Origin: Entomortierella parvispora E1425
Lineage: Eukaryota > Fungi > Mortierellomycota
Length of the DNA stretch: 64,000 nt
Assembly: GCA_020891255.1 (NCBI GenBank)
Contig: BQFW01000001.1
Location: 744,001 to 808,000, forward strand
Direction of reading: 5' to 3'
Under the pieces are notes generated by a model. The model was not told the DNA's origin. It did no database searches and saw only the letters and a list, made by a program, of their open reading frames with translations. Shown piece after piece: positions 1-62,030 of this stretch (positions are counted from its first letter, which is position 1; each line of letters opens with the position of its first letter). The position numbers and the translations under genes are program-made.

Positions 1-3000
1 GCCGCCAGAGGAAGGTCGCCTCTCTTCATCTTGGACGACGTGAAGGCCGAAATGACTGATTCCGCCAATTTCGTCTCTGCCCCTGCTTGCTGATTTTGTG
101 TTTTGTTTTTCATGCTCGCGCCGATTAATCGCTCGGCTGCCTGTCGCAATGTGATGGTGGGAGCGGGTTCGCCTTTTGCGCCACGCTGTTTCAAGAGTCG
201 AGCGTTACCGGCGCCTAGGTCAGTGACGCCCTCGATGCAGGTGTCGTTGGCCACTAACTTTCCATAAGCCGAGGTCCAAACCAATACAACCCTTCGCAAG
301 GGTTCCTGCTTCTTGTCCTTCTCAAAGGTTCCTGAACGCGTTTCCTGACTCGAGGTGAGTGTTGAATCCACAGCTGGAGTTGGTTCTGGATTTTCAAGGA
401 CACGCCAGGTGCTGACACTCATATCCTCACATCCCAAGCTAAAGCTGGTGCCCTCAAAAGTCGGATCCACATCCAGGCACGTCACTCGACCTGGCAATTT
501 GTCCAGTACCGCCAGCGCCTGACCTGTTCGACTGCACCATACACGTGCAGAACTCTTCGCCATGTCACCGCCCGCTGAAATAATCCTTTCTCCATCAGGC
601 GTAAAGGCAACACCGGTAACACTTCCACTATCGCCACACACGGAAAACCTCTGTTTGCCTGTTTCAACGTCCCAGACTTGGATATTCTGTCTAGAAACGT
701 TGGATGCGATTTGTTTCCCATCAGGCGAGAACACAACAGACACCGTGCCATAATGCGTCGCCATTGTCGTCACAGCCTGTCCAGTCTTGGGATCCCACAG
801 TCGGCATGTCTTGTCCTCGCCAGCTGATGCCAACAGTCGTCCATCGGGGGAATAGACGACACTCATAGCTCTATCGGTATGCCCCTTCAATATGAATTGA
901 CATTCGCCAGTGCGTGGGTCCCAGAGTCGGATTGTATGATCGTTTGATGAGGATGCGATTTGATTCCCTGATGGTGAAAAGACGACACTTCTTAACGCGT
1001 CCACGTCGTTCAAGATCCGAACCAGCGTACCACGGTGTCGGTCCCACAAACGAAGCGTCCTGTCATAACTAGCCGAGACGACCAGATTGCCATCGGGTGA
1101 ATAGGCAACGTCCACGACCGCTTTTGTGTGGCCCTCCAAAACAAACTTGCACCGGCCAGCTGCAAGGTCATGCAATCGCACAGTTCCATCGTCACCGCAA
1201 GTGGCTGCCTCAAATCCAGTAGGGGCATGAGCCCAGCGGTGTATCTTCTCCCTGTGTCCAGTTTTGACTTCAATGGACTCACCAGTCATCTTATCCCATA
1301 GTCTAATACTCGAATCGGGACTCACAGAACCCACCATTTGACTTCCTGAAAGATATGACAAATGTAGAGGCGGTTGGGTATGGCCATCTCGGGCAGGAGC
1401 CGACTTTGCACTTCGGGCGTCCCAAAGGCGAATGGCCTTGTCTCGACCTGAAGATGCCAGCTGGAGACCGTTGGGGTGATATGCGATTCCATGAACAGCG
1501 ACATTGTGACCTTGAAGGGTTGCGATGTTGACACCAGTCTGTGCGTCCCACTGTCGCACAGTAAAGTCCCAACTGCTTGTGGCGACTTGGAGAGAGTCGG
1601 GTGAGAAGGCGATGGCGCGGACTACCTTAAAGTGTCCCTTCAAAATTGGCCCCGGTGCTCCTGTTTCCGCATCCCAAAGTCGCGCTGTCATGTCCTTGCT
1701 GGTGGTGGCGATCTGAAGTCCATTGGGTGAATATTCTATGGACGTAATGTCGGCTGTGTGTCCTTCCAAGGTGTAGAGGCACCGGCCACTGGCCACATCC
1801 CATATTCTTGCGGTACCATCCATACTTGCAGACGCAACCCGATCACCGGACCGAGAGAACTTGGTCATGACCACACTTTCAGTATGGCCACTGAGAACAT
1901 ATACACATTCTCCTGTCCTAGTGTCCCAAAGGCGTACGTTTTTGTCGTCGCAAGAGGATACTAGCAATTTTCCATCGGGCGAGAAGGCGACATGGGAAAC
2001 AGTTTTCCCTTCAAAGTAGTCGTCCGCCTCGGGATCCTTCTTCACATGAAGTAACACATGGACCTCCTTGTTTGTGTTGGGATTGTAGATCCTGACGGTG
2101 GAATCCTCACTGCAGGAAGCGACTAGATCTCCATCAGGCGAGAATGCAACTTCGTTGACATTATCGGAATGTGTTGTCCAGAATCCCCTGACTTTACCAG
2201 ACTGAACTTCATACACTCGCACACTCTTTTCATAGGTTCCGCAAGCCAGAAGCGAGTCATCCATGGAAAACTCAAGACCCATGATATCGTCTTCCTCGCC
2301 AAAGTCCTGATTGAGGGAAAGAAGTTTCTCCCATGTGAGGGTGTCGTAAATGTTGATACCATTGGGCCCGGATGTCACCGCAGCAAGCTTGGATCCATCA
2401 TGAGAATATCGAAAAACGAGTCCTATATCGGCATTCTCATCTTTCAATGTTGGCCACTCTCCAAACTGTGCCCGAGTCATTTTCGCTCCCGTAAAATCCG
2501 ATTGTCGAAGCCAGGCGCCTCGGAAATTGACCTTTCTCAAATCAGCACCTTGTAGTTGCACAGAGTCGAACACACCGTTCGTTAGATCCGCTCCCGGAAT
2601 CTGGGCACCTCGAAGATCCATTCCTGAGAATCCATAACCGGCGCGAACCAAAATTGAAACTGCATTGGTTGCCGCAATACGCCACTTCTTGTCCAACTTT
2701 GAATATTCTAGGTAACCGAGCAATTGGTCCTTGAAGGCCGGTTCGGGATGCACACGCTCAGCCAGAAACTGAAGAACTGAGATATCCTTGATAAAGCTCC
2801 TTTTGACAAGAAGCGAGTCCGGATCAGGTCCCTGTGAGGTTTTTGCCTTTGTTTCTTCCTGCGCTGTAATTTCTGGATCCTCGAAACTGAATATAGAGCT
2901 AATGCTGTTGCGCCGTTTCTTTTCGGGTTCTGCCGTTTCCAACTTGAAACCCGCCTTCTTTTGAGGTTCATAAATGGCTCGACTGACCCCATACTCTAGG

Positions 3001-6000
3001 ATAGACCGATGGATAAATCCAAAGCGTCCTCCATTGCGGGTCATAGGGATCGCCTTCCTCAGCAAACGAATCTCATCGTCCTTCCGTCCAAAGAATCGCT
3101 CCTTCCACGTTTGGACATCGCGGGCCTTGGAATATTCAACCACAGGGTTTCCGTGGTGCTCCTTGTAGATAGCCGCAGACAGATCTCGCAGATACGCTAG
3201 ACCCTGTTGAGTGAACCCATCATCAGAAAGACTCTCAAACGCCTCCTTCTCCTGGTCGGTCAAGTCTTGAACCGCCATACGCTTCTTGTTTCGTTCCAGC
3301 CACTGAGCCACGAACTCGTCATACAGAACCACTCTGGTAATTTTGTTGGCGGCGAGCTTTTGACCAGGATCTGTAAGGCGTGGCAAGACCTCCAATGATA
3401 GCGTCAATAGGAAAGGGTTCTTGACGAGCTCCTGCAGACTTGGAATCTGATCAAGAACACCCTCGTAATCAGATGCCTCCCACAAAGGACGTTTGATAGA
3501 GACGTACATGGCAATGTACTCTTTGATCTGAGGTATCGAAAATGGCACTAGCACGGCTTGCATGAGCAGATCAGGGTCTGAAGGGCTTGAACGCGCGGGC
3601 TGGAAAAGGTCACGGTAATCCAGGCCAAGATGCTCACTACGACAGCTGATCACCATCTGAGCCTTCCATCCTCCGTCCTTGTTTAGTCCATTCGATTCGT
3701 AAAGGTTTTGTGTCTGTTGACTCTCATCATAGCCGTCGCAGATGATGACGAATTCACGATCCTTGAGCTCTCGGATTTGCGACTCTGAAAACTCACTGAT
3801 GCGAAGGTGCTTGGCGATAAGGTCCTTCTCTGGTCTGTCAATTGAAGGTAAACTGATCAAGAGAGGAATTCGTCCAGTCTTGGGCTTGTACGCCTTCCAG
3901 AGCTTGAGATCCAGCTCCCGATTGAAGGTGGTTTTTCCCACTCCTGAATCACCGAGGAGTAAAAGCACTTTGAGGTCGCTCTCCAAGAACTCGTCGACTA
4001 CAGGGATAAGCTTGAACAGAGCGTCATCGCTTGCCTGCAAACTAGCCTTGGCAAGGGGGGGAACATACACCGTGCCTCCTCGTTCCTTTATCCGTTGTCG
4101 AGCAATCCGTCGAAGATCAGCTTCGACAACTGTCTTTTTTTGGACACGGTCCAACAAAGATGGGGATGCGAGCTCTGGGAGCCCAGACTTTAGAAGATGA
4201 GTGCTCTTTTCCGCTCCGATGCATTTCCTGTAAATATCCAGCTTGGCAGGGTCTCCTTCTGTCTCAAGTTCTTTAAAGAGGGTTCCTGCATCTGCAAGAT
4301 GTAAAACGATGTTAGCCAGAATAAGGAAAGAATATCCAACACATATCCTTCATGAATATGTACCTGGCAAACTATCTGGAGAAGGCGCAGCCAGTTGCTT
4401 GAGGATATCCAAGATGTATTCCTTGATCTGAGGGAGAGTGCCCCAGGAAAGGTCGTTGCGGTAAATTTCTCCAAGGAATCGAACTGCCCCTTGCCGTGTC
4501 TCGATACCCCAGAGTGGACTAGCAGCAAGATTACCCAAGCGCTGGCAGATTCCCCACTGGAATGCAAGCTCAAGTCGACAAGGCGCTTCACATACTAGAG
4601 TCTTGAATTTGGCCAGCTCACCTCCCTCGATCAAGGTATCAGCACCGCGCAAGGCAGAGTACCATGCGCGCTTGCGATTGAAAGTAAGGCCTTCCTTCAA
4701 GCTGTCCATCAAATCCTGCTCGCCTTCGTAAACAGCACTCACGCCTTCGTACGCCGTTTTGGCGAGCTCAAAGACCTGCTGCATGCCCTCGAATCCTTCC
4801 TGAATGCTCAGAAGACCATCCATGAATCCACTCAAGTCGAGTCCCTTGACGGCACTGACTAATCCAGAGATGCCCTTAACTACCTTGGTTGTGCGTCTGA
4901 CAGTGGCCTGCCAAGGAGATTCGTCGTCAGGGACACACAACAGTGCTTGAAAGGCGTAGGAGGCGTAATACTTTAGATGCAAGTCACTGCTTCCTTGAAG
5001 ACCTCCCAGGAACGCCAGCAGCGGCTCGTGCATTTCTACGCGCTTCAGTCCAGTTACTTTGGTGTCTGCCATGGAGTCAAGAACAGCGCAAACGGCGACC
5101 GTGAGTTCAAAGATCTGGTCCTGTGACTGGGAATGAGTTGCTTGAAGACGACTGCTTACAGGCCCCAAGACCTCAATCAGATCCTGCGCCTTGAGGTGAC
5201 CTGGGAAGGCATTCCGAAGCAGCTGGGCCAATCCTCTGAGAGCGCCAATGTCGAGAATCGGTGATCCGTTTACGTTGTTAAGGAACTGACGAAGCAAGAA
5301 CCGAAAGTCATCTTCATCGAGGACTGGAACAAGACAGAGGACCTCAGTAATAGCCTTCTTGTCCTTGATCTCATCGCCAGTGAATGCTCGAATAAGGTCA
5401 GTTGCTAGTGTATCCAGTCTGGCTCGCTCTTCCTCGCTCTTTTCAGTCTCCAGCAGCCATTTCCATGCAGTGGGATCGAGTGTATCCTCGGGTAAATTAG
5501 CAGAGCCTTGCCTCAGTAAACCGAGGCAGGAAACTAGCTGAGGGGTATCCTCTACTCGACTGTCAGGTGCAGGGAATGTCCATGATAACGAGAGCGGGCG
5601 GACATCGTCCGGAAAGATACTTTCAGACACAGTGGCCGCCTCGACAGTTTTGCCTTTCTTCTTGGGTGGTGGAGATGCTATTGTTTTCTGTGCGCCCGGT
5701 CCACTACAATGCAGCCAGCAAACACCATCAGCATTCAGTTGTCAAATGTTGCGACTCTGTTTCTGTCCCCGTTTATATTTTCTTACCCCCACTTGTCTGC
5801 TTTTTTGCGACTGGCTAGAACCCTGTCTGGCTGCCCAAGATCGGCCATCAAGTTGGCGTGGTCGAGGTATGCTTCTGCGATGCCTTCCCGGAGCTCCTTT
5901 TCAGTGTCATTTTTGACATTGGCTGGTGGGGTCCTCTTCACAGACTTTTTCATATGTTCCAGCAACGAGTCGGCGTACTCACAAAGCACAAGTTGAATCT

Positions 6001-53869: not shown

Positions 53870-55012
53870 ATGTCACGTACAGGTGCCCTCGACCTTCCTG
53901 AGATTCTCTCTCGAATTGCAAGCTACCTTGAACCCAGTGACCTTGCATCCTGTACACAAGTGAGTCATGACTGGAGCGACTCATTCTCACCGCCACTTTA
54001 CAACTCTGTCGTCTTATCCAACCATCGCTTCCGTATGGAATCGATCGAGAGAAATAATCACTTGATACGACATATGACCATCAATCGCTCTTTCTTTACG
54101 GAACTCCAATACACAAAATTCAAAGTACTTTCCAGCGTCTTGGCCAATTCAGCCCTTCTCACCCTGAAGATGAGAGATCTCTCAATAGGGGACGATGAAA
54201 CTCGGCTACTGGCTCGAGCGCTTAAGACAAATTCTTCTCTGGCCACTCTAGAGTTGGTATACAATTTCATTGGCAAGGTGGGAGCAATGGCGCTCGCGCA
54301 GGCACTAAAGACCAACTCAACCTTGACAACTTTGAGCTTGGAACTCAACTACATCGGATATTATGGAGCAGAAGCACTGTCAAAGGCACTTATGGTCAAT
54401 TCAACGCTGTCTGCTCTATTCTTGTCGCGCACTGAATTCGGGGACTTTGGAGTGCAGGATCTGGCAGAGGCACTCAGGACCAATTCGGCCCTACGCATCC
54501 TGGAGCTACGCCACAACAATATATATGAAGATGGAGCCCAGGCACTGGCCGAGTCCCTCAAGATCAACTCGGTGCTGACCACACTGGACTTGGGAAACAA
54601 TTCAATTGGAAGCAATGGGGCCAAAGCGTTGGCGGAGGCACTCAGAATCAATTCGACTCTAACCCACCTGGAGTTGGCGGAAAACGAGGTCTTGGATGAC
54701 GGAGCTATGGCGTTGGCAGAGGCACTCAAGACGAACTCAGTTTTGACCTGCCTGAACTTGGGAGGTAACTCAATTGAAAGCAACGGAGCCAATGCACTCG
54801 CCAATGCACTGATAACCAACACGACGCTGACAGCTCTGTACCTGTACAACAATTCGATTGGGGACATTGGGAGTCAGTCCATGTGTGAAGCAATTCAGGT
54901 CAACTCGACGCTGACCAAGTTGTTCGTGTATCAGAATTTGATTGGAGATATCGGGGGCGAGGCGTTTTCCAAGCTGCTCAAGAACAATACAGCACTGGAA
55001 ATAGTTTATTGA
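53870..55012 (+). CDS. F-box + RI-type (NLRC3-like) LRR protein, 380 aa, intact paralogue 2
   Basis: ALDLPEILSRIASYLEPSDLASCTQVSHDW F-box plus ~10 28-aa repeats ALAEALKTNSTLTTLxLxxNxIGxxGA. Confidence 0.92.
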   Translation: MSRTGALDLPEILSRIASYLEPSDLASCTQVSHDWSDSFSPPLYNSVVLSNHRFRMESIERNNHLIRHMTINRSFFTELQYTKFKVLSSVLANSALLTLKMRDLSIGDDETRLLARALKTNSSLATLELVYNFIGKVGAMALAQALKTNSTLTTLSLELNYIGYYGAEALSKALMVNSTLSALFLSRTEFGDFGVQDLAEALRTNSALRILELRHNNIYEDGAQALAESLKINSVLTTLDLGNNSIGSNGAKALAEALRINSTLTHLELAENEVLDDGAMALAEALKTNSVLTCLNLGGNSIESNGANALANALITNTTLTALYLYNNSIGDIGSQSMCEAIQVNSTLTKLFVYQNLIGDIGGEAFSKLLKNNTALEIVY

Positions 55013-56470: not shown

Positions 56471-58178
56471 CCCGGAAGGCAGGCAGGCTTGCGACCAAAG
56501 TCTTGAAAGGGCAGGCAGGTTTGCGGCCAAAGACTTTGAAGGGCAGGAAAGGTAGGCCGATGGATCAGGACCATTGGGACCGAGGCCGAGGAGGACAGGA
56601 CTGAACTTGAAGAGCCGATGTCGTTGGGCCGGGGACACTTGTTGCTGGCTGAGTGGAGAGTAGCAGCATGGTGGTGTGTTTTGTGTGCTTTGTGTGTGTG
56701 GAAGGGGAGTGAAGTAGAAATGAAGGATGAGGAGCAAAAAAAGAGGGGGATCGTGGGGGGGTATTTGTATGAAAACTGTTTGACTTATCGACTGCGGCCC
56801 CTCGACATGGCGACATAGCGACATGAGGAGGGAGGAAATCGATTGGTCCAAGGATAAGAGACAACGAAGGAAGGATGGCGATTGGACCGTCGAAACATGT
56901 GGAAGGAAAGATAAGCGAACGAACAGACGTTAACTTTTGGGTGTGGAGTGAAAATAAGGGAACTGGCCGCGCGTGGACGCGAGTTCAGACGCGCCATTTT
57001 GCCACGGAGGATGAAAATAAGGGAACTGGTCGCGTGTGAACGGAAAATGAGGTGGCGCATGGCGACGTGTTTTTGAAATTTGGTGAAATTCTGAAAAAAT
57101 GATGATGGCTTGGCGGATGAAAACAAAACAACAGTCTCAACCTAGGCGAAGCATCGACGCGTGTGACAGCAACCAGCGGGAATTACCCGCGTGAAAGAAG
57201 GTGGATCTCGTTCGCCACAGTCCCTTTACCACACACAGCACCTATGACTTACGGCACAATCATATTTTGAGCGTTGTTTTTTTTCCGCATTTCAAGGGCA
57301 TTGAAGTACACTTTGTCAGTGGCAGCCAGCAAGGAAAGGTGGCACACCGACAGGGGAGGTGTCAATGTATTTATCGATTGTTGAGCAAGCAGAAGAGGGA
57401 CATGGTCAAGATACGGCTGGCCTCCTTTAGCTCTGGCGTGTTGAACGGAAAGATGAACTTTCTCTGGAGTGCTGACCTGGGAAGGGAGCTGGATCATGTC
57501 TTCACTGCGAAATGCACTGAGGTGTACTTCAAGTTTCGAGTGGTTAATGAATGAGTTTTGTTCTAAGTTTCTTGTTCGCGCCATCGATTTCCGGCTAAAA
57601 CATGCTGATATCACCATGTCTATGGTCAGTCTCAGTGGGCATCGGGTTCTGCAGTCGACATGGCAGGATGCTTCAATGCTATTCACCATCATTTACACCA
57701 TTCATCCTCAAGGCTGCTGGATCGATTTCGAATGTTGGTGTCCTGGGAGCAAGTTGCCATCAAATTAAGAAAGGGGGCCAGGCGCTGTCTGCAACACTCC
57801 AAGGTCTCCAAGGTATCTCGACCTGGACGACTTGAGCCTACGGGGGCTACTCCACCGGATACATGGAGCGGGAGGCATTCAAAGTATCTTAGACTCCAAC
57901 TCGATGTCTATTTGTTCCAGGAGCAGGGTCCACACGGGATTTAGCCTGAGTTCAAAATAAAGGCTCAGTACGTGCCTGGAAAGCAAGATGTTTGCATGCA
58001 GAGGAAGCGCTCACAAAATGCAGGCCAGCATTCAATTCGTTCTTTTCTTTCCCTCATTGGCGCCACCATCCCATTCTCATTGCCTTTTCTCCATCGTCGA
58101 CTTCACTGCCATTCATGCCGATTGTTAACGACATTACACTCATCCGCAGACATTAGTGTTGTTCTTTCATTTACCAGA

Positions 58179-59307
58179 ATGACTCAGCCCCGTGCGCTCG
58201 ACCTTCATGAGATTCGCTCTCGAATCGCCAGTTTCTTGGAGCGCAGAGACATTGTATCCTGCGCACGAGTGAGTCTGGATTGGAATGCCTCGTTCTCACC
58301 GTCTCTCTACAACTCTGTCGTATTATCGAGAAATAGCCCCAGCATGGAAGCTATCGAGAGAAATAAGCACCTAATTCGATACTTGAAGATCTTTCGCCGG
58401 GCCCACATGTCGATATTTGCGAAACCTGACGTACTTTTTAGTACCATGTCCAGCCCTGCTCTGGCCACTCTTGAGATGCACCTCACCTGGATGAGAGACA
58501 GCGGGGCGCAGGCAGTAGCCCATGCTCTCAAGTATAATTCTACCTGACCACTTTGATCTTACGAACCAATTCAATCAGGGAAGCCGGGGCACGAGCACTT
58601 GCGGAGGCACTCGAGACCAATTCGTCCCTCACCACTTTGAAGCTGGACCAGGACAAGATCGGATCCAACGGAGGTCAGGCTCTGGCTATGGCTATTACGA
58701 TAAACTCGACTCTGTCCACCCTATCTTTATGGTGTGCCGGTATCGGGAACGAAGGAGCTGAAGCAATGGCAAAGGCTCTAAAGACCAACTCGACTCTGAC
58801 CTCTTTGACCTTGGTTGGAAATGATATTAGGGACCATGGAGCCAAGGCACTGTCTGGGGCACTCAAGAATAACTCTGCGCTGGCTGACTTGGACTTGTCC
58901 GGCAATCATATCAAAGAGCCCGGAGCTCATGCACTGGCTGAGTTACTCACGATCAGGTCAGCTCTTTCCACCTTAAAATTAAAGCACAACCGGATTGGGG
59001 ATGATGGGACTCATTCTCTGGCTGAGGCGCTCAACACAAACTCGACCTTTGTCAATTTCAACCTGAGCAACAACTCGACTGGGTGCAACGGAGCGATAGC
59101 TCTGGCAGAGGCGCTCAGGACCAATTCGACCCTGAAAACCCCGCACTACACCTCAATCCTATCAGAGACAAAGGAAGTCTGTCGCTGGCAGAGGTGTTCA
59201 AGACCAATTATACTCTGACCACTTTGAGCTTGCACAACAACCCGATTGGGGATGTTGGAATGCAGGCACTGAACGAGGCACGCAAGGCCCTGTCGACGCG
59301 GTCCTAA
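58179..59307 (+). pseudogene. F-box + RI-type LRR paralogue 3 (two frameshifts)
   Basis: MTQPRALDLHEIRSRIASFL...; a 1-bp loss at ~58543 (TCT ACC TGA instead of ACC CTG ACC) and a second shift near 59145. Confidence 0.85.
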
Positions 59308-59564
59308 GTCACTTTGTTGTTTTAGGGCAGGTGAATAAATTGATCCTTCGAAAAAAAAAAAAAAAAAAAAGGCACGCGCCTGAAACCTTTGTAAAGTGGG
59401 GTCCGCGCGCGACGTTCAAAAATTAGGCAGTGACAGCGGTCAGCATTCAGTTCCTCGCTCATTGCCACAGCCCCATTGTCATTACCGTCTCCACTGTCGT
59501 CCTCATTACCACATGAATCGCCTGTTTGCTTCAAGTTGCATCGTCTTGATTCAGTTTCATTAGA

Positions 59565-59810
59565 ATGGCACAGACATGTCCCCTCGACCTTCATGAGATT
59601 CGTTCTCAAATCGCCAGTTACTTGGAACCGAAAGATCTTGCGTCCTGCGCGCAAGTGAGTCAGGATTGGAACGAAACTTTCACACGGCAACTCTACAGGT
59701 CTGCCGTCATGTCAAGACGTGGCCCCAGATTTTGTCCTCCCGTACGCCTGAACATAAAGCGGGCATCTCGTACATCATCCGACTTTCAAAATAGTACTTC
59801 TTATTCTTAA
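59565..59810 (+). pseudogene. F-box paralogue 4, truncated directly after the F-box
   Basis: MAQTCPLDLHEIRSQIASYLEPKDLASCAQVSQDWNETF..LYRSAVMS; similarity to the paralogues ends at ~59728. Confidence 0.8.
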
Positions 59811-59879
59811 GATAGGCGCCAACCTACTGACGAACCACCAGACGTAAGAACTAATGTAATGTCCAGTGCTGGGTCGCAA

Positions 59880-60170
59880 CTAACAATTTAGTTTTTTGAT
59901 CCAGGGCCTTTCGGCGTTGCCGATTTGTTCGCCAGTTTGAGGGTTGACACAGAAGCAATAGCCTGTAGAGCCGTTGCACTGAAGCTTGGAATAGGTGCCA
60001 TCATATTCACATTTAGGAACAAAAACACCTACTCGCGGATTGTCTCCTCCAAGTAATTTGAGTGCCTTCTGCCGATCTGCTTGACACTTTGTTTGATGCG
60101 CGCTTGCCATCAGAGTCTTGCTCAATAAAAGAGCAACAACGAAATAAATCATGTTCTTGTTTGGACGCAT
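59880..60170 (-). CDS. Secreted single-domain thyroglobulin type-1 (thyropin-like) protein, 96 aa
   Basis: Signal peptide MIYFVVALLLSKTLMASA, then TKC...FVPKCEYDGTYSKLQCNGSTGYCFCVNPQTGEQI...C; six Cys in Tg1 type-1A spacing; intronless. Confidence 0.88.
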   Translation of the reverse strand: MRPNKNMIYFVVALLLSKTLMASAHQTKCQADRQKALKLLGGDNPRVGVFVPKCEYDGTYSKLQCNGSTGYCFCVNPQTGEQIGNAERPWIKKLNC

Positions 60171-60739
60171 TGGATACCTATAGAGAATTGATGAGATTGG
60201 AAGGGAAAAAAATAGGTCAGTCGATGAATTGACACTCCAACATAGAAATACCGTAGCCTGAGTATACGCAATCTTACGAGAGTCTGGTCAAGATACACAG
60301 ATGTGTTCAGGAGATGAGGGAAGACTGGTCTTCTTGAGGGCGGTCTTAATAGAGGGCTCTAGAGCACTTATCAGTGTTTCTTTGAGCAGAGATCTTTTGA
60401 GTGGCGGCTTTTATAATGTTTGTCAAGGCGGTTCTTGCAGTAGATGCTGTGAGTGAAAAGTGTACAGAGTGCAGTTGCGAGTTTAGGTTTGAATGGGATC
60501 AGTACGCTTTTATATTCGTGAAGAGGATGAAGAATGAAAAAAAAAAAAAATGCAGGAGGATAGGAAAAAATGATAGTATGGATGAGGACAAGAAAAAGAA
60601 CGTATGCATGAAAAGTAGGGGTAGAGATGGGCAGGGGCATGGGGAAAGCGGGTGGAGGAAAAGTGGAGGCAGGAAAAAAATGGATACAAAAAAACGAAAA
60701 AAGGACACATGCCTGAAAAGAGGAACCAAGGGAAGCGAA

Positions 60740-61173
60740 ATGGAAGGGACAGCCGTGCCCTCCGTTCCAGATCTGAAAGCAGCCAGAGAACACTGCTTGG
60801 GACCGACTTCGGCGCCTGCAAAGACTCTTTTGCGTTCTCATGTACTTGATACCGCGCTTGATCCACGACTGTTTGATCTGCTGCTAACGGATGTAGCAAA
60901 CGACGACGACCTCGAAAGCGTGCCAAGCCAGCAAATGTCCACTTCCTTGTCGACACTGACGCCCCTGTCACATATCTTTGCAGAAAAGCATTGAGGACTT
61001 TGGGCGCAAGGGCTGAATCAGATATCAAAAGGGACGGGCTCACCTGGGTGGTGACGGTCAACGGGGTCAGACCCGGGGTGATCTTGTCGTCATTGGAGAA
61101 ACATTTCCCTGATGTCAGCCTCCTTGGATCTGACTTCCTTCCTGGTAACAGCACGCTGCAGCTTTTTTTTTAG
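60740..61173 (+). pseudogene. Retropepsin-like aspartic protease gene remnant
   Basis: NVHFLVDTDAPVTYLC (DTG changed to DTD at 60952-60960) ... HFPDVSLLGSDFL; upstream HCLGPT..DPRLF lies in another frame (shift near 60895). Confidence 0.55.
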
Positions 61174-61463
61174 TAAGTTTATAAAAAAAAAAAGTGCTTA
61201 GTCAGCATGCACCGACCATGATGCCTAGAATGCACCAATTCCTGCGTGCAAAAGTGCGTTGATGAATGCAAACTAGGCACCGTTGAGCGCATGGATCCAT
61301 GCGACCCATGCATCAACTCAATGACCGAGTCGTTGGATCTATGAACTCATCGCATCACAGACTCACGTGGCCACTATCGTTGTTGATGGCCAGGACGGTA
61401 CGATACACCTTTAAGTAGAACCACTATATGTAGTTGCTCGCACGGCGTGGCCCTCTGCTCTTT

Positions 61464-61615
61464 ATCCGTCTTATTCCACATTGATCGATACTGACAGAGG
61501 CCAGCACGGTGACCCTTAGGTAGAGCAGCCCTCTCATTATTTATTATTACCAATACATGATCCGTCTTATTCCACATTGATCGATACTGACAGAGGCCAG
61601 CACGGCGACCCTTAG
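61464..61615. repeat. 56-bp direct repeat x2 separated by 40 bp
   Basis: atccgtcttattccacattgatcgatactgacagaggccagcacggYgacccttag at 61464-61519 and 61560-61615. Confidence 0.93.
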
Positions 61616-61740
61616 TCTGATTCTCACTCGTCACCTAGGATTGCCATATCCCGCACAGCGCCCCTCAAGCCTGCCCCCGTACGCAACATCGTGAGCGTCC
61701 AACCTTCGTGTCCTTCATGTTTCAGTCCTTTTTTTGAACG

Positions 61741-62030
61741 ATGACTCTTCTCGACCTTCATGAGATTCGCTCTCGCATCGCCATTTGCCTGGAGCCAAAG
61801 GCCTTGCGTCCTGTACGCGTGTGAGTCAGGAGTGGGACACTCCATTCTCATCATAGCTCTACATCTCTATCATTTTGTCGGAGAGAGGCCCCAGCAAGGA
61901 ATCAGTCAAGAATCCAGTTGCTTTCTAGCATCATGGCCAGCTCAGCTCTGACCATTTTGGATAATAAAAACACTTCTGCGAGACGTGCGGGGACTCAGGC
62001 GGTAGCTAAAGCCCTGAAAACCGATTTTCT
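61741..62030 (+). pseudogene. F-box + LRR paralogue 5 (heavily decayed)
   Basis: LDLHEIRSRIAICLEPK / shifted SCTRVSQEWDTPFSS*LY..LSERGPS...AGTQAVAKALKT. Confidence 0.75.

Follow-up and report, generated by a model that had tools for sequence, protein, structure and literature searches.

The gene of interest in the window (the whole 64-kb stretch of DNA analyzed) is an intronless open reading frame (ORF) of 96 codons plus a TAG stop at 59880..60170 on the minus strand. It is supported by the ORF list, by the match of its product to the thyroglobulin type-1 (Tg1) profile PF00086 (Thyroglobulin_1), and by a short-read contig that runs across it with no differences. The frame begins with ATG and ends with the TAG immediately after Cys96, and a script run on the translation places the cysteines at residues 29, 54, 65, 72, 74, and 96. 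Two motifs can be read around them, P52-x-C54-x3-G58-x-Y60-x3-Q64-C65 and G67-S-T-G-Y-C72-F-C74-V. Residues 29-86 align to positions 1-58 of the 67-position PF00086 profile at an E value of 4.7e-16; with a score of 58.4 bits, where the curated cut-off is 20.6, the match is far beyond chance. The six canonical cysteines have the spacing of subtype 1A (1B has one pair fewer); all six occupy invariant columns in an alignment of 13 sequences (A2), and in one of 71 sequences (A1) invariance is complete for C29, C54, and C74 and almost so for C96. Gly48 and Pro52, invariant columns in A2, are present as well. In the core signature, Q64-C65 is kept and C-F-C-V replaces C-W-C-V, a conservative Trp-to-Phe change that is also found in a Clytia Tg1 domain of A2 (P0015).

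At the N terminus, a basic n-region is followed by a hydrophobic core at residues 8-16 and by A-S-A at positions -3 to -1, which we read heuristically as a signal peptide with predicted cleavage after residue 24 (residues 1-24; 60099..60170, minus strand). A structural model places a separate, low-confidence helix at residues 6-23, and the in-frame Met7, an alternative start, leaves the signal-peptide reading the same. The predicted mature protein (59883..60098, minus strand) has 72 residues, a mass of ~8.0 kDa and a pI of 8.8, and consists of exactly one type-1A domain with nothing attached, as the profile, the cysteines, the model, and the structure alignment agree. No second Tg1 domain was found by script within the 64-kb window. 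A first-pass annotation of this DNA had described a signal peptide plus exactly one domain, the same six cysteine positions, the same two motifs, and a stop after the last Cys; each of these particulars is confirmed, and so, by the profile match and the canonical cysteines, is its assignment to Tg1 type 1A. It is very probable that the product is a secreted protein consisting of one Tg1 type-1A domain with three predicted disulfides, the secretion being predicted from the N-terminal sequence. The gene thus adds to a known family, from a kingdom where it was not expected.

The identity of the host follows from the neighboring genes. The ARM_5 gene of the window (4353-5630, minus strand) has 692 relatives at an E value of 1e-20 or better, and every one with a name comes from the Mortierellaceae, with Mortierella sp. 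AD094 (72% identity), Dissophora globulifera (71%), and Gryganskiella cystojenkinii (66%) ahead of many further Mortierella species. The host is therefore a Mortierellaceae fungus, in keeping with the soil fungus that the first-pass annotation had supposed. The window also holds F-box/RI-type LRR arrays.

For a Tg1 domain, found otherwise in animals, bacteria, and viruses, and here in an ORF with atypical third-position GC content (GC3), one has to ask whether the assembly is chimeric or contaminated, with DNA from an animal or bacterium wrongly assembled onto fungal sequence. The region was found in two DNA runs of one sample, where a single short-read contig of 2159 bp and depth 72.1 covers 59248-61406 with no differences. 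The flanking single-copy contigs are similar in depth (76-121); since the run may be the assembly's own sample, this linkage check is one of consistency and not independent proof. The same 2159-bp contig carries, besides the Tg1 ORF, a truncated F-box fragment on the plus strand (59565..59732; residues 1-54 only), recognized by tblastn with an intact 380-aa copy and by PF12937 (E 2.3e-09). Its protein is 59% identical to the intact copy at 53870-55009, and its DNA matches the copy at 58176 at 91% over a 46-nt core and at 75% over 167 nt. With the Tg1 ORF and an F-box fragment of Mortierellaceae type joined on one contig, contamination or chimerism is very unlikely, and we give that explanation almost no weight. 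The contig continuity at issue in the first-pass annotation held up at the level of consistency, with no chimera seen across the gene. The Tg1 ORF is a genuine gene in the nuclear genome of a Mortierellaceae fungus.

F-box N termini occur on the plus strand at 58176, 59562, and about 61729. The segments that they open (58176-59331, 59562-59732, and about 61729-61910) have spacings of 1386 and 2167 nt. LRRs come after the first of them, the second breaks off after residue 54, and only a short piece is left of the third. Homology in the middle copy ends past residue 54, and a gap of 150 bp separates the end of this fragment from the Tg1 stop codon, the two lying on opposite strands. The Tg1 gene sits in a decaying birth-and-death F-box/LRR array. 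At 61341-61841 the short-read contig depth is 2900-4800, versus about 72 in neighboring single-copy DNA; this is therefore a high-copy repeat, and it lies 1.2 kb upstream of the Tg1 gene. Within the repeat lies a 96-nt tandem duplication (61464-61519 and 61560-61615), and many contig ends bunch at 61380-61467. A mobile element was considered and rejected: there are no flanking terminal inverted or long terminal repeats, and the flanking ORFs are without a Pfam domain.

The GC3 of the Tg1 ORF is 0.44, below all of nine neighboring coding stretches (0.52-0.72), which fits a young or foreign gene, a weak indication for a gene of 96 codons. The codon adaptation index was uninformative here, as random windows score as high as genes. 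From the composition, the truncated F-box gene next door in a birth-and-death array, the high-copy repeat nearby, the lack of any listed RNA run for the genome, and the failure of the searches run to find orthologues, one could argue that the ORF was recently acquired or duplicated and is silent or decaying, its reading frame intact by youth and not by selection. Such a gene would be only a taxonomic curiosity, as would one whose product is inactive. However, no family-invariant residue has been lost, the predicted signal peptide is whole, and the domain limits are exactly kept, and we consider this account improbable.

The structural evidence comes from an AlphaFold2 model whose input alignment was built from the best-matching domain cut out of each of 70 matches of an exhaustive HMMER search. 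The mean pLDDT is 86, with values >90 across most of the domain. A helix at residues 28-40 and strands at 63-65, 72-75, and 82-87 make up the N-terminal helix and small three-stranded sheet of the fold, which superpose on solved Tg1 domains. The best match found by Foldseek in the PDB is 1ICF chain I, the p41 fragment in complex with cathepsin L (TM 0.80 by target, 39% identity), followed by saxiphilin. With VIA-align, the saxiphilin Tg1 domains score Z 9.7-10.3 at 40-43% identity and p41 scores Z 9.5 (61/65 residues, rmsd 1.8 A, 43% identity). The Z values are 9.0-9.4 for thyroglobulin and IGFBP domains and ~7 for EpCAM/Trop2, and they drop to <3 for unrelated chains. A phmmer search against PDB sequences returned thyroglobulins, saxiphilins, the p41 fragment, a tick thyropin, IGFBPs, and EpCAM/Trop2. 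The Tg1 fold assignment is secure. Two of the checks proposed in the first-pass annotation, HMMER with PF00086 and structure prediction, came out in its favor, the one above cut-off and the other with a fold that superposes on Tg1 domains; and the likeness that it had noted to p41-type inhibitors is borne out, p41 and saxiphilin being the closest solved structures.

The fold alone is no proof of function, because noninhibitory Tg1 domains fit the model nearly as well. Inhibition is not known for a large number of Tg1 domains, among them those of IGFBPs, nidogen, and EpCAM/Trop2, and only a few Tg1 proteins have been confirmed as inhibitors (PMC7863939). Hence the fungal protein could be a noninhibitory binding module like the Tg1 domains of IGFBPs, nidogen, SMOC, and EpCAM, with a ligand, glycan, or surface as its partner and not a protease. 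The Z values of 6.7-9.4 for IGFBP C-domains, thyroglobulin repeats, and EpCAM/Trop2 speak for this, and the basic character of the mature protein (pI 8.8) would suit polyanion binding. On the other side, the top matches in structure and identity (40-43%) are the inhibitory p41 and saxiphilin domains, whereas the IGFBP domains reach only 24-30% identity, and the stand-alone secreted architecture is like that of "equistatin-like" and spider-venom proteins, unlike that of matrix proteins. We regard a binding module as unlikely, if the least unlikely of the alternatives to an inhibitor.

The preferred reading is that the protein acts as a thyropin. In thyropins, three loops form a wedge in the papain-like cleft, of which L1 and L2 occlude the reactive site (PMC7863939). 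The fungal model has candidates for all three, on the minus strand in each case. Putative L1 comprises residues 41-53 (60012..60050), between helix 28-40 and Cys54; its boundaries are drawn from the model, from the positions of Gly48 and Pro52, and from the published description (PMC10889554). Putative L2 runs from Cys65 to Cys72 (59955..59978), between strands 63-65 and 72-75 of the model, and has an N-G-S sequon at residues 66-68; a disulfide-clamped L2 has been described for p41 and saxiphilin domain 1 (PMC10889554). Putative L3, residues 76-81 (59928..59945), would be the hairpin between strands 72-75 and 82-87, as the model and the published loops suggest (PMC7863939). Under this reading, papain-like (C1A) cysteine endopeptidases would be blocked reversibly by the L1-L3 wedge lodging in their active-site cleft. 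The targets would be foreign enzymes outside the hypha, and ecology suggests the digestive cathepsins of fungivorous nematodes, arthropods, or amoebae, with a role in defense against grazers; gut proteases of grazers were also the target that the first-pass annotation had proposed. Apoplastic cysteine proteases of plant roots, a target familiar from effector biology in general, could be others.

The thyropin mechanism is the best supported because the closest structures are inhibitors, Gly48 and Pro52 are kept, the domain is a free single unit with predicted secretion, as in the stand-alone Tg1 proteins of animals, and there is fungal precedent for such a defense. p41 and saxiphilin are proven cathepsin inhibitors (PMC7863939; PMC10889554), the L1 Gly and Pro are thought important for recognition (PMC10889554), and cysteine-protease inhibitors that are secreted or stored, for example mycocypins, are known to serve fungi in defense (PMC10816698). 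There are several points against an inhibitor. Glycosylation of Asn66 in the N-G-S sequon could hinder binding through L2; the signature Trp is Phe (CFCV); the gene lies beside a truncated gene in a decaying array and has the low GC3 given above; and, with no orthologue or close homologue found in the sequence searches, conservation would be unusable as functional evidence. On balance, and by analogy with its nearest relatives, we would put the inhibitor mechanism close to an even bet, perhaps a shade under. The explanation as a whole, a Mortierellaceae gene for a secreted Tg1 protein with a thyropin mechanism and foreign targets, we hold to be about evenly balanced between right and wrong.

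A Tg1 inhibitor need not act on cysteine proteases. Tg1 domains also inhibit aspartic proteases, as does equistatin domain 2, and testicans inhibit metallo- and serine proteases (PMC10889554; PMC7863939). Since it is in the loops that the Tg1 fold varies, a change of target class could be envisaged for the fungal protein. Against this, the nearest characterized structures inhibit cysteine cathepsins, and an inhibitor of another class seems to us a poor prospect. Concerning the sequon itself, L2 reads C-N-G-S-T-G-Y-C, with the N-glycosylation site where most Tg1 domains carry His. The same Asn is present in a spider U24-ctenitoxin-like protein (P0360) and in a few metagenome sequences.

Among known systems, p41 (MEROPS I31.002; 1ICF chain I) is the natural comparison for a cysteine-protease inhibitor of this kind, as it too is a single type-1A domain of ~65-72 residues with the same fold. 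We take p41 to share with the fungal protein the T-K-C-Q N terminus, the G...P-x-C of L1, and the QC-x-GS-x-GYC-x-CV core. It differs in being an alternatively spliced insert in a vertebrate immune-cell membrane protein, whereas the fungal domain is free-standing and predicted to be secreted; the fungal domain also has CFCV in place of CWCV, the N-G-S sequon in L2, and a different L3 and C-terminal tail (R-P-W ... C). The saxiphilin Tg1 domains (PDB 6O0D, 8D6M), the best structural matches, inhibit papain and cathepsin L (PMC7863939) but, unlike the fungal domain, are embedded in an 850-aa transferrin-like amphibian protein. The architecture itself has precedent, since stand-alone secreted single-domain Tg1 proteins are already known in animals. 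Those of the spider U24-ctenitoxin-Pn1a type and of fish have the same architecture at 82-110 aa; stand-alone Tg1 proteins of animals are mostly named by similarity only, and equistatin, from a sea anemone, has three domains. In fungi, the functional analogues would be the mycocypins (clitocypin, I48; macrocypins, I85) and the cocaprins of basidiomycetes, cysteine-protease inhibitors viewed as a defense against insects (PMC10816698). Membership in the mycocypins (I48/I85) is excluded by fold, as these are nonhomologous beta-trefoil proteins of 138-169 aa. If the Mortierellaceae protein is an inhibitor, it would represent a fourth, unrelated scaffold for fungal cysteine-protease inhibitors, remarkable for being very small (72 aa, three disulfides). 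Such an activity would also open a molecular way, amenable to testing, into how Mortierellaceae, fungi abundant in soil and the rhizosphere, withstand grazers or interact with roots.

Relatives of the protein were sought in several ways. A search by word index through 5.8 billion clustered proteins of comparable length returned nothing. The exact protein and those of seven other ORFs of the window were absent from the protein collection, and this genome is therefore outside the database. An exhaustive HMMER search gave 1716 matches; the 150 listed are mostly multi-domain proteins and leave single-domain matches out, and fungal relatives may exist among the others. The ten best single-domain scores among these 150 have 36-55% identity and come from frog, coral, fish, hydrozoan, and amphioxus proteins, one euglenid transcript cluster, and unnamed metagenome proteins. 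When the profile search was limited to proteins of 53-168 aa, 511 matches were obtained, and the named ones in the best 120 are all animal: fish "equistatin-like" and "saxiphilin-like" proteins, spider venom-gland "U24-ctenitoxin"-type proteins, and cnidarian and tardigrade sequences. Two unnamed matches on long ENA contigs proved to be exons of animal genes; fifteen other unnamed matches resemble animal exons or marine bacterial proteins.

At the DNA level, a metagenome scan with eight-residue peptide patterns from the protein returned nothing. The core pattern STG[YF]C[WF]CV retrieved 372 metagenome relatives; the best 80 of these are marine or coral associated, with 32-65% identity in the best segment, and none of the 80 is a soil-fungal locus. 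Searches of the Atlas and AFDB gave no fungal-labeled Tg1 cluster, and the literature searched yielded no report tying thyroglobulin type-1 to Mortierella, nor one in the wider fungal searches. Mortierellaceae DNA is abundant in these collections, as seen from the JGI and ENA matches to ARM_5. Because no close Tg1 relative turned up despite this, the results suggest that the family is narrowly distributed or fast evolving, with the proviso that small unannotated genes and motif variants would slip past these searches.

The Tg1 domain has been called animal specific (PMC10889554), and its fold, g.28, is counted among the metazoan synapomorphies (PMC9541633). The first-pass annotation had likewise described the domain as metazoan, which holds for this literature but not for the bacterial-type marine and virus-labeled contigs that came up in the searches. 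One marine locus (L006, 6007-6720) encodes a 237-aa protein with a signal peptide and a PF00086 match at E 7.8e-17, and its gene adjoins a Peptidase_S24 gene and an impB/mucB/samB polymerase gene, which together make up a bacterial umuD/umuC pair. Dozens of similar low-GC, gene-dense marine contigs have the same N-terminal Tg1 architecture, and the Atlas includes a bacterial PF00086 cluster. There is, then, a sizeable bacterial Tg1 family, unmentioned in the thyropin literature consulted. Some 30 loci resemble L006 (L012, L019, L037, and L042 are examples), with a signal peptide, then Tg1, and then variable C-terminal parts.

Small stand-alone Tg1 ORFs occur on two dense, ORFan-rich contigs (L039, 553-834; L071, 5947-6255) that also carry ankyrin, patatin, and bestrophin-like genes and look like giant virus DNA. 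Five virus-labeled IMG/VR contigs of 52-299 kb (L083-L087) carry Tg1 relatives as well, and viruses may move the domain between hosts. As in the fungal protein, PF00086 comes directly after the signal peptide in the marine bacterial-type and virus-labeled proteins; unlike it, these are built of several parts, with C-terminal extensions and lengths of 130-490 aa, and they are only 35-40% identical to it. The "animal-only" distribution is true of the literature and not of the sequence data. With one copy in a zygomycete-grade soil fungus and others in bacteria and viruses, the picture of an animal module is incomplete; at the same time, the bacterial and viral copies soften the taxonomic surprise of the fungal gene.

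Where the fungal copy came from was addressed with a maximum-likelihood tree of 57 domains and 74 columns. The fungal sequence falls in a large polytomy with animal and unassigned sequences and in none of the starred clades; the bacterial-type clade is supported at 97/94, and the fungal sequence lies outside it. Its highest pairwise identity, 52-54%, is to a spider U24-ctenitoxin-like protein. Because the fungal branch is in a polytomy, no claim of a donor is made, and the tree would fit horizontal transfer and ancient retention alike. A bolder version, that one branch of the Mortierellaceae has lineage-restricted, secreted thyropin-like effectors, taken up horizontally from an animal, giant-virus, or bacterial donor and not handed down from the opisthokont ancestor, and that these serve as cysteine-protease inhibitors in an arms race with grazers or plants, with variable loops and a place in a birth-and-death array as its marks, appears to us unlikely, although, if true, it would bring the first thyropin-type inhibitor to the fungal kingdom. 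Within the tree, the bacterial clade is sister to a group of coral thyroglobulin-like domains (support 90/80).

Synteny was also considered, by way of the Gryganskiella ARM_5 locus (L082), and set aside: only ARM_5 and an adjoining large gene are common to the two loci, and the side toward Tg1 is not. The ARM_5 family is hugely expanded in the Mortierellaceae. As for the large gene, a minus-strand stop-free frame of ~1450 codons (3-4349) follows directly after the ARM_5 ORF and continues beyond the limit of the window, and it is 48% identical to the stretch beside the Gryganskiella ARM_5 gene (L082, 11861-15967). The minus strand at 3-5741 is probably occupied by one very large gene or by a conserved gene pair.
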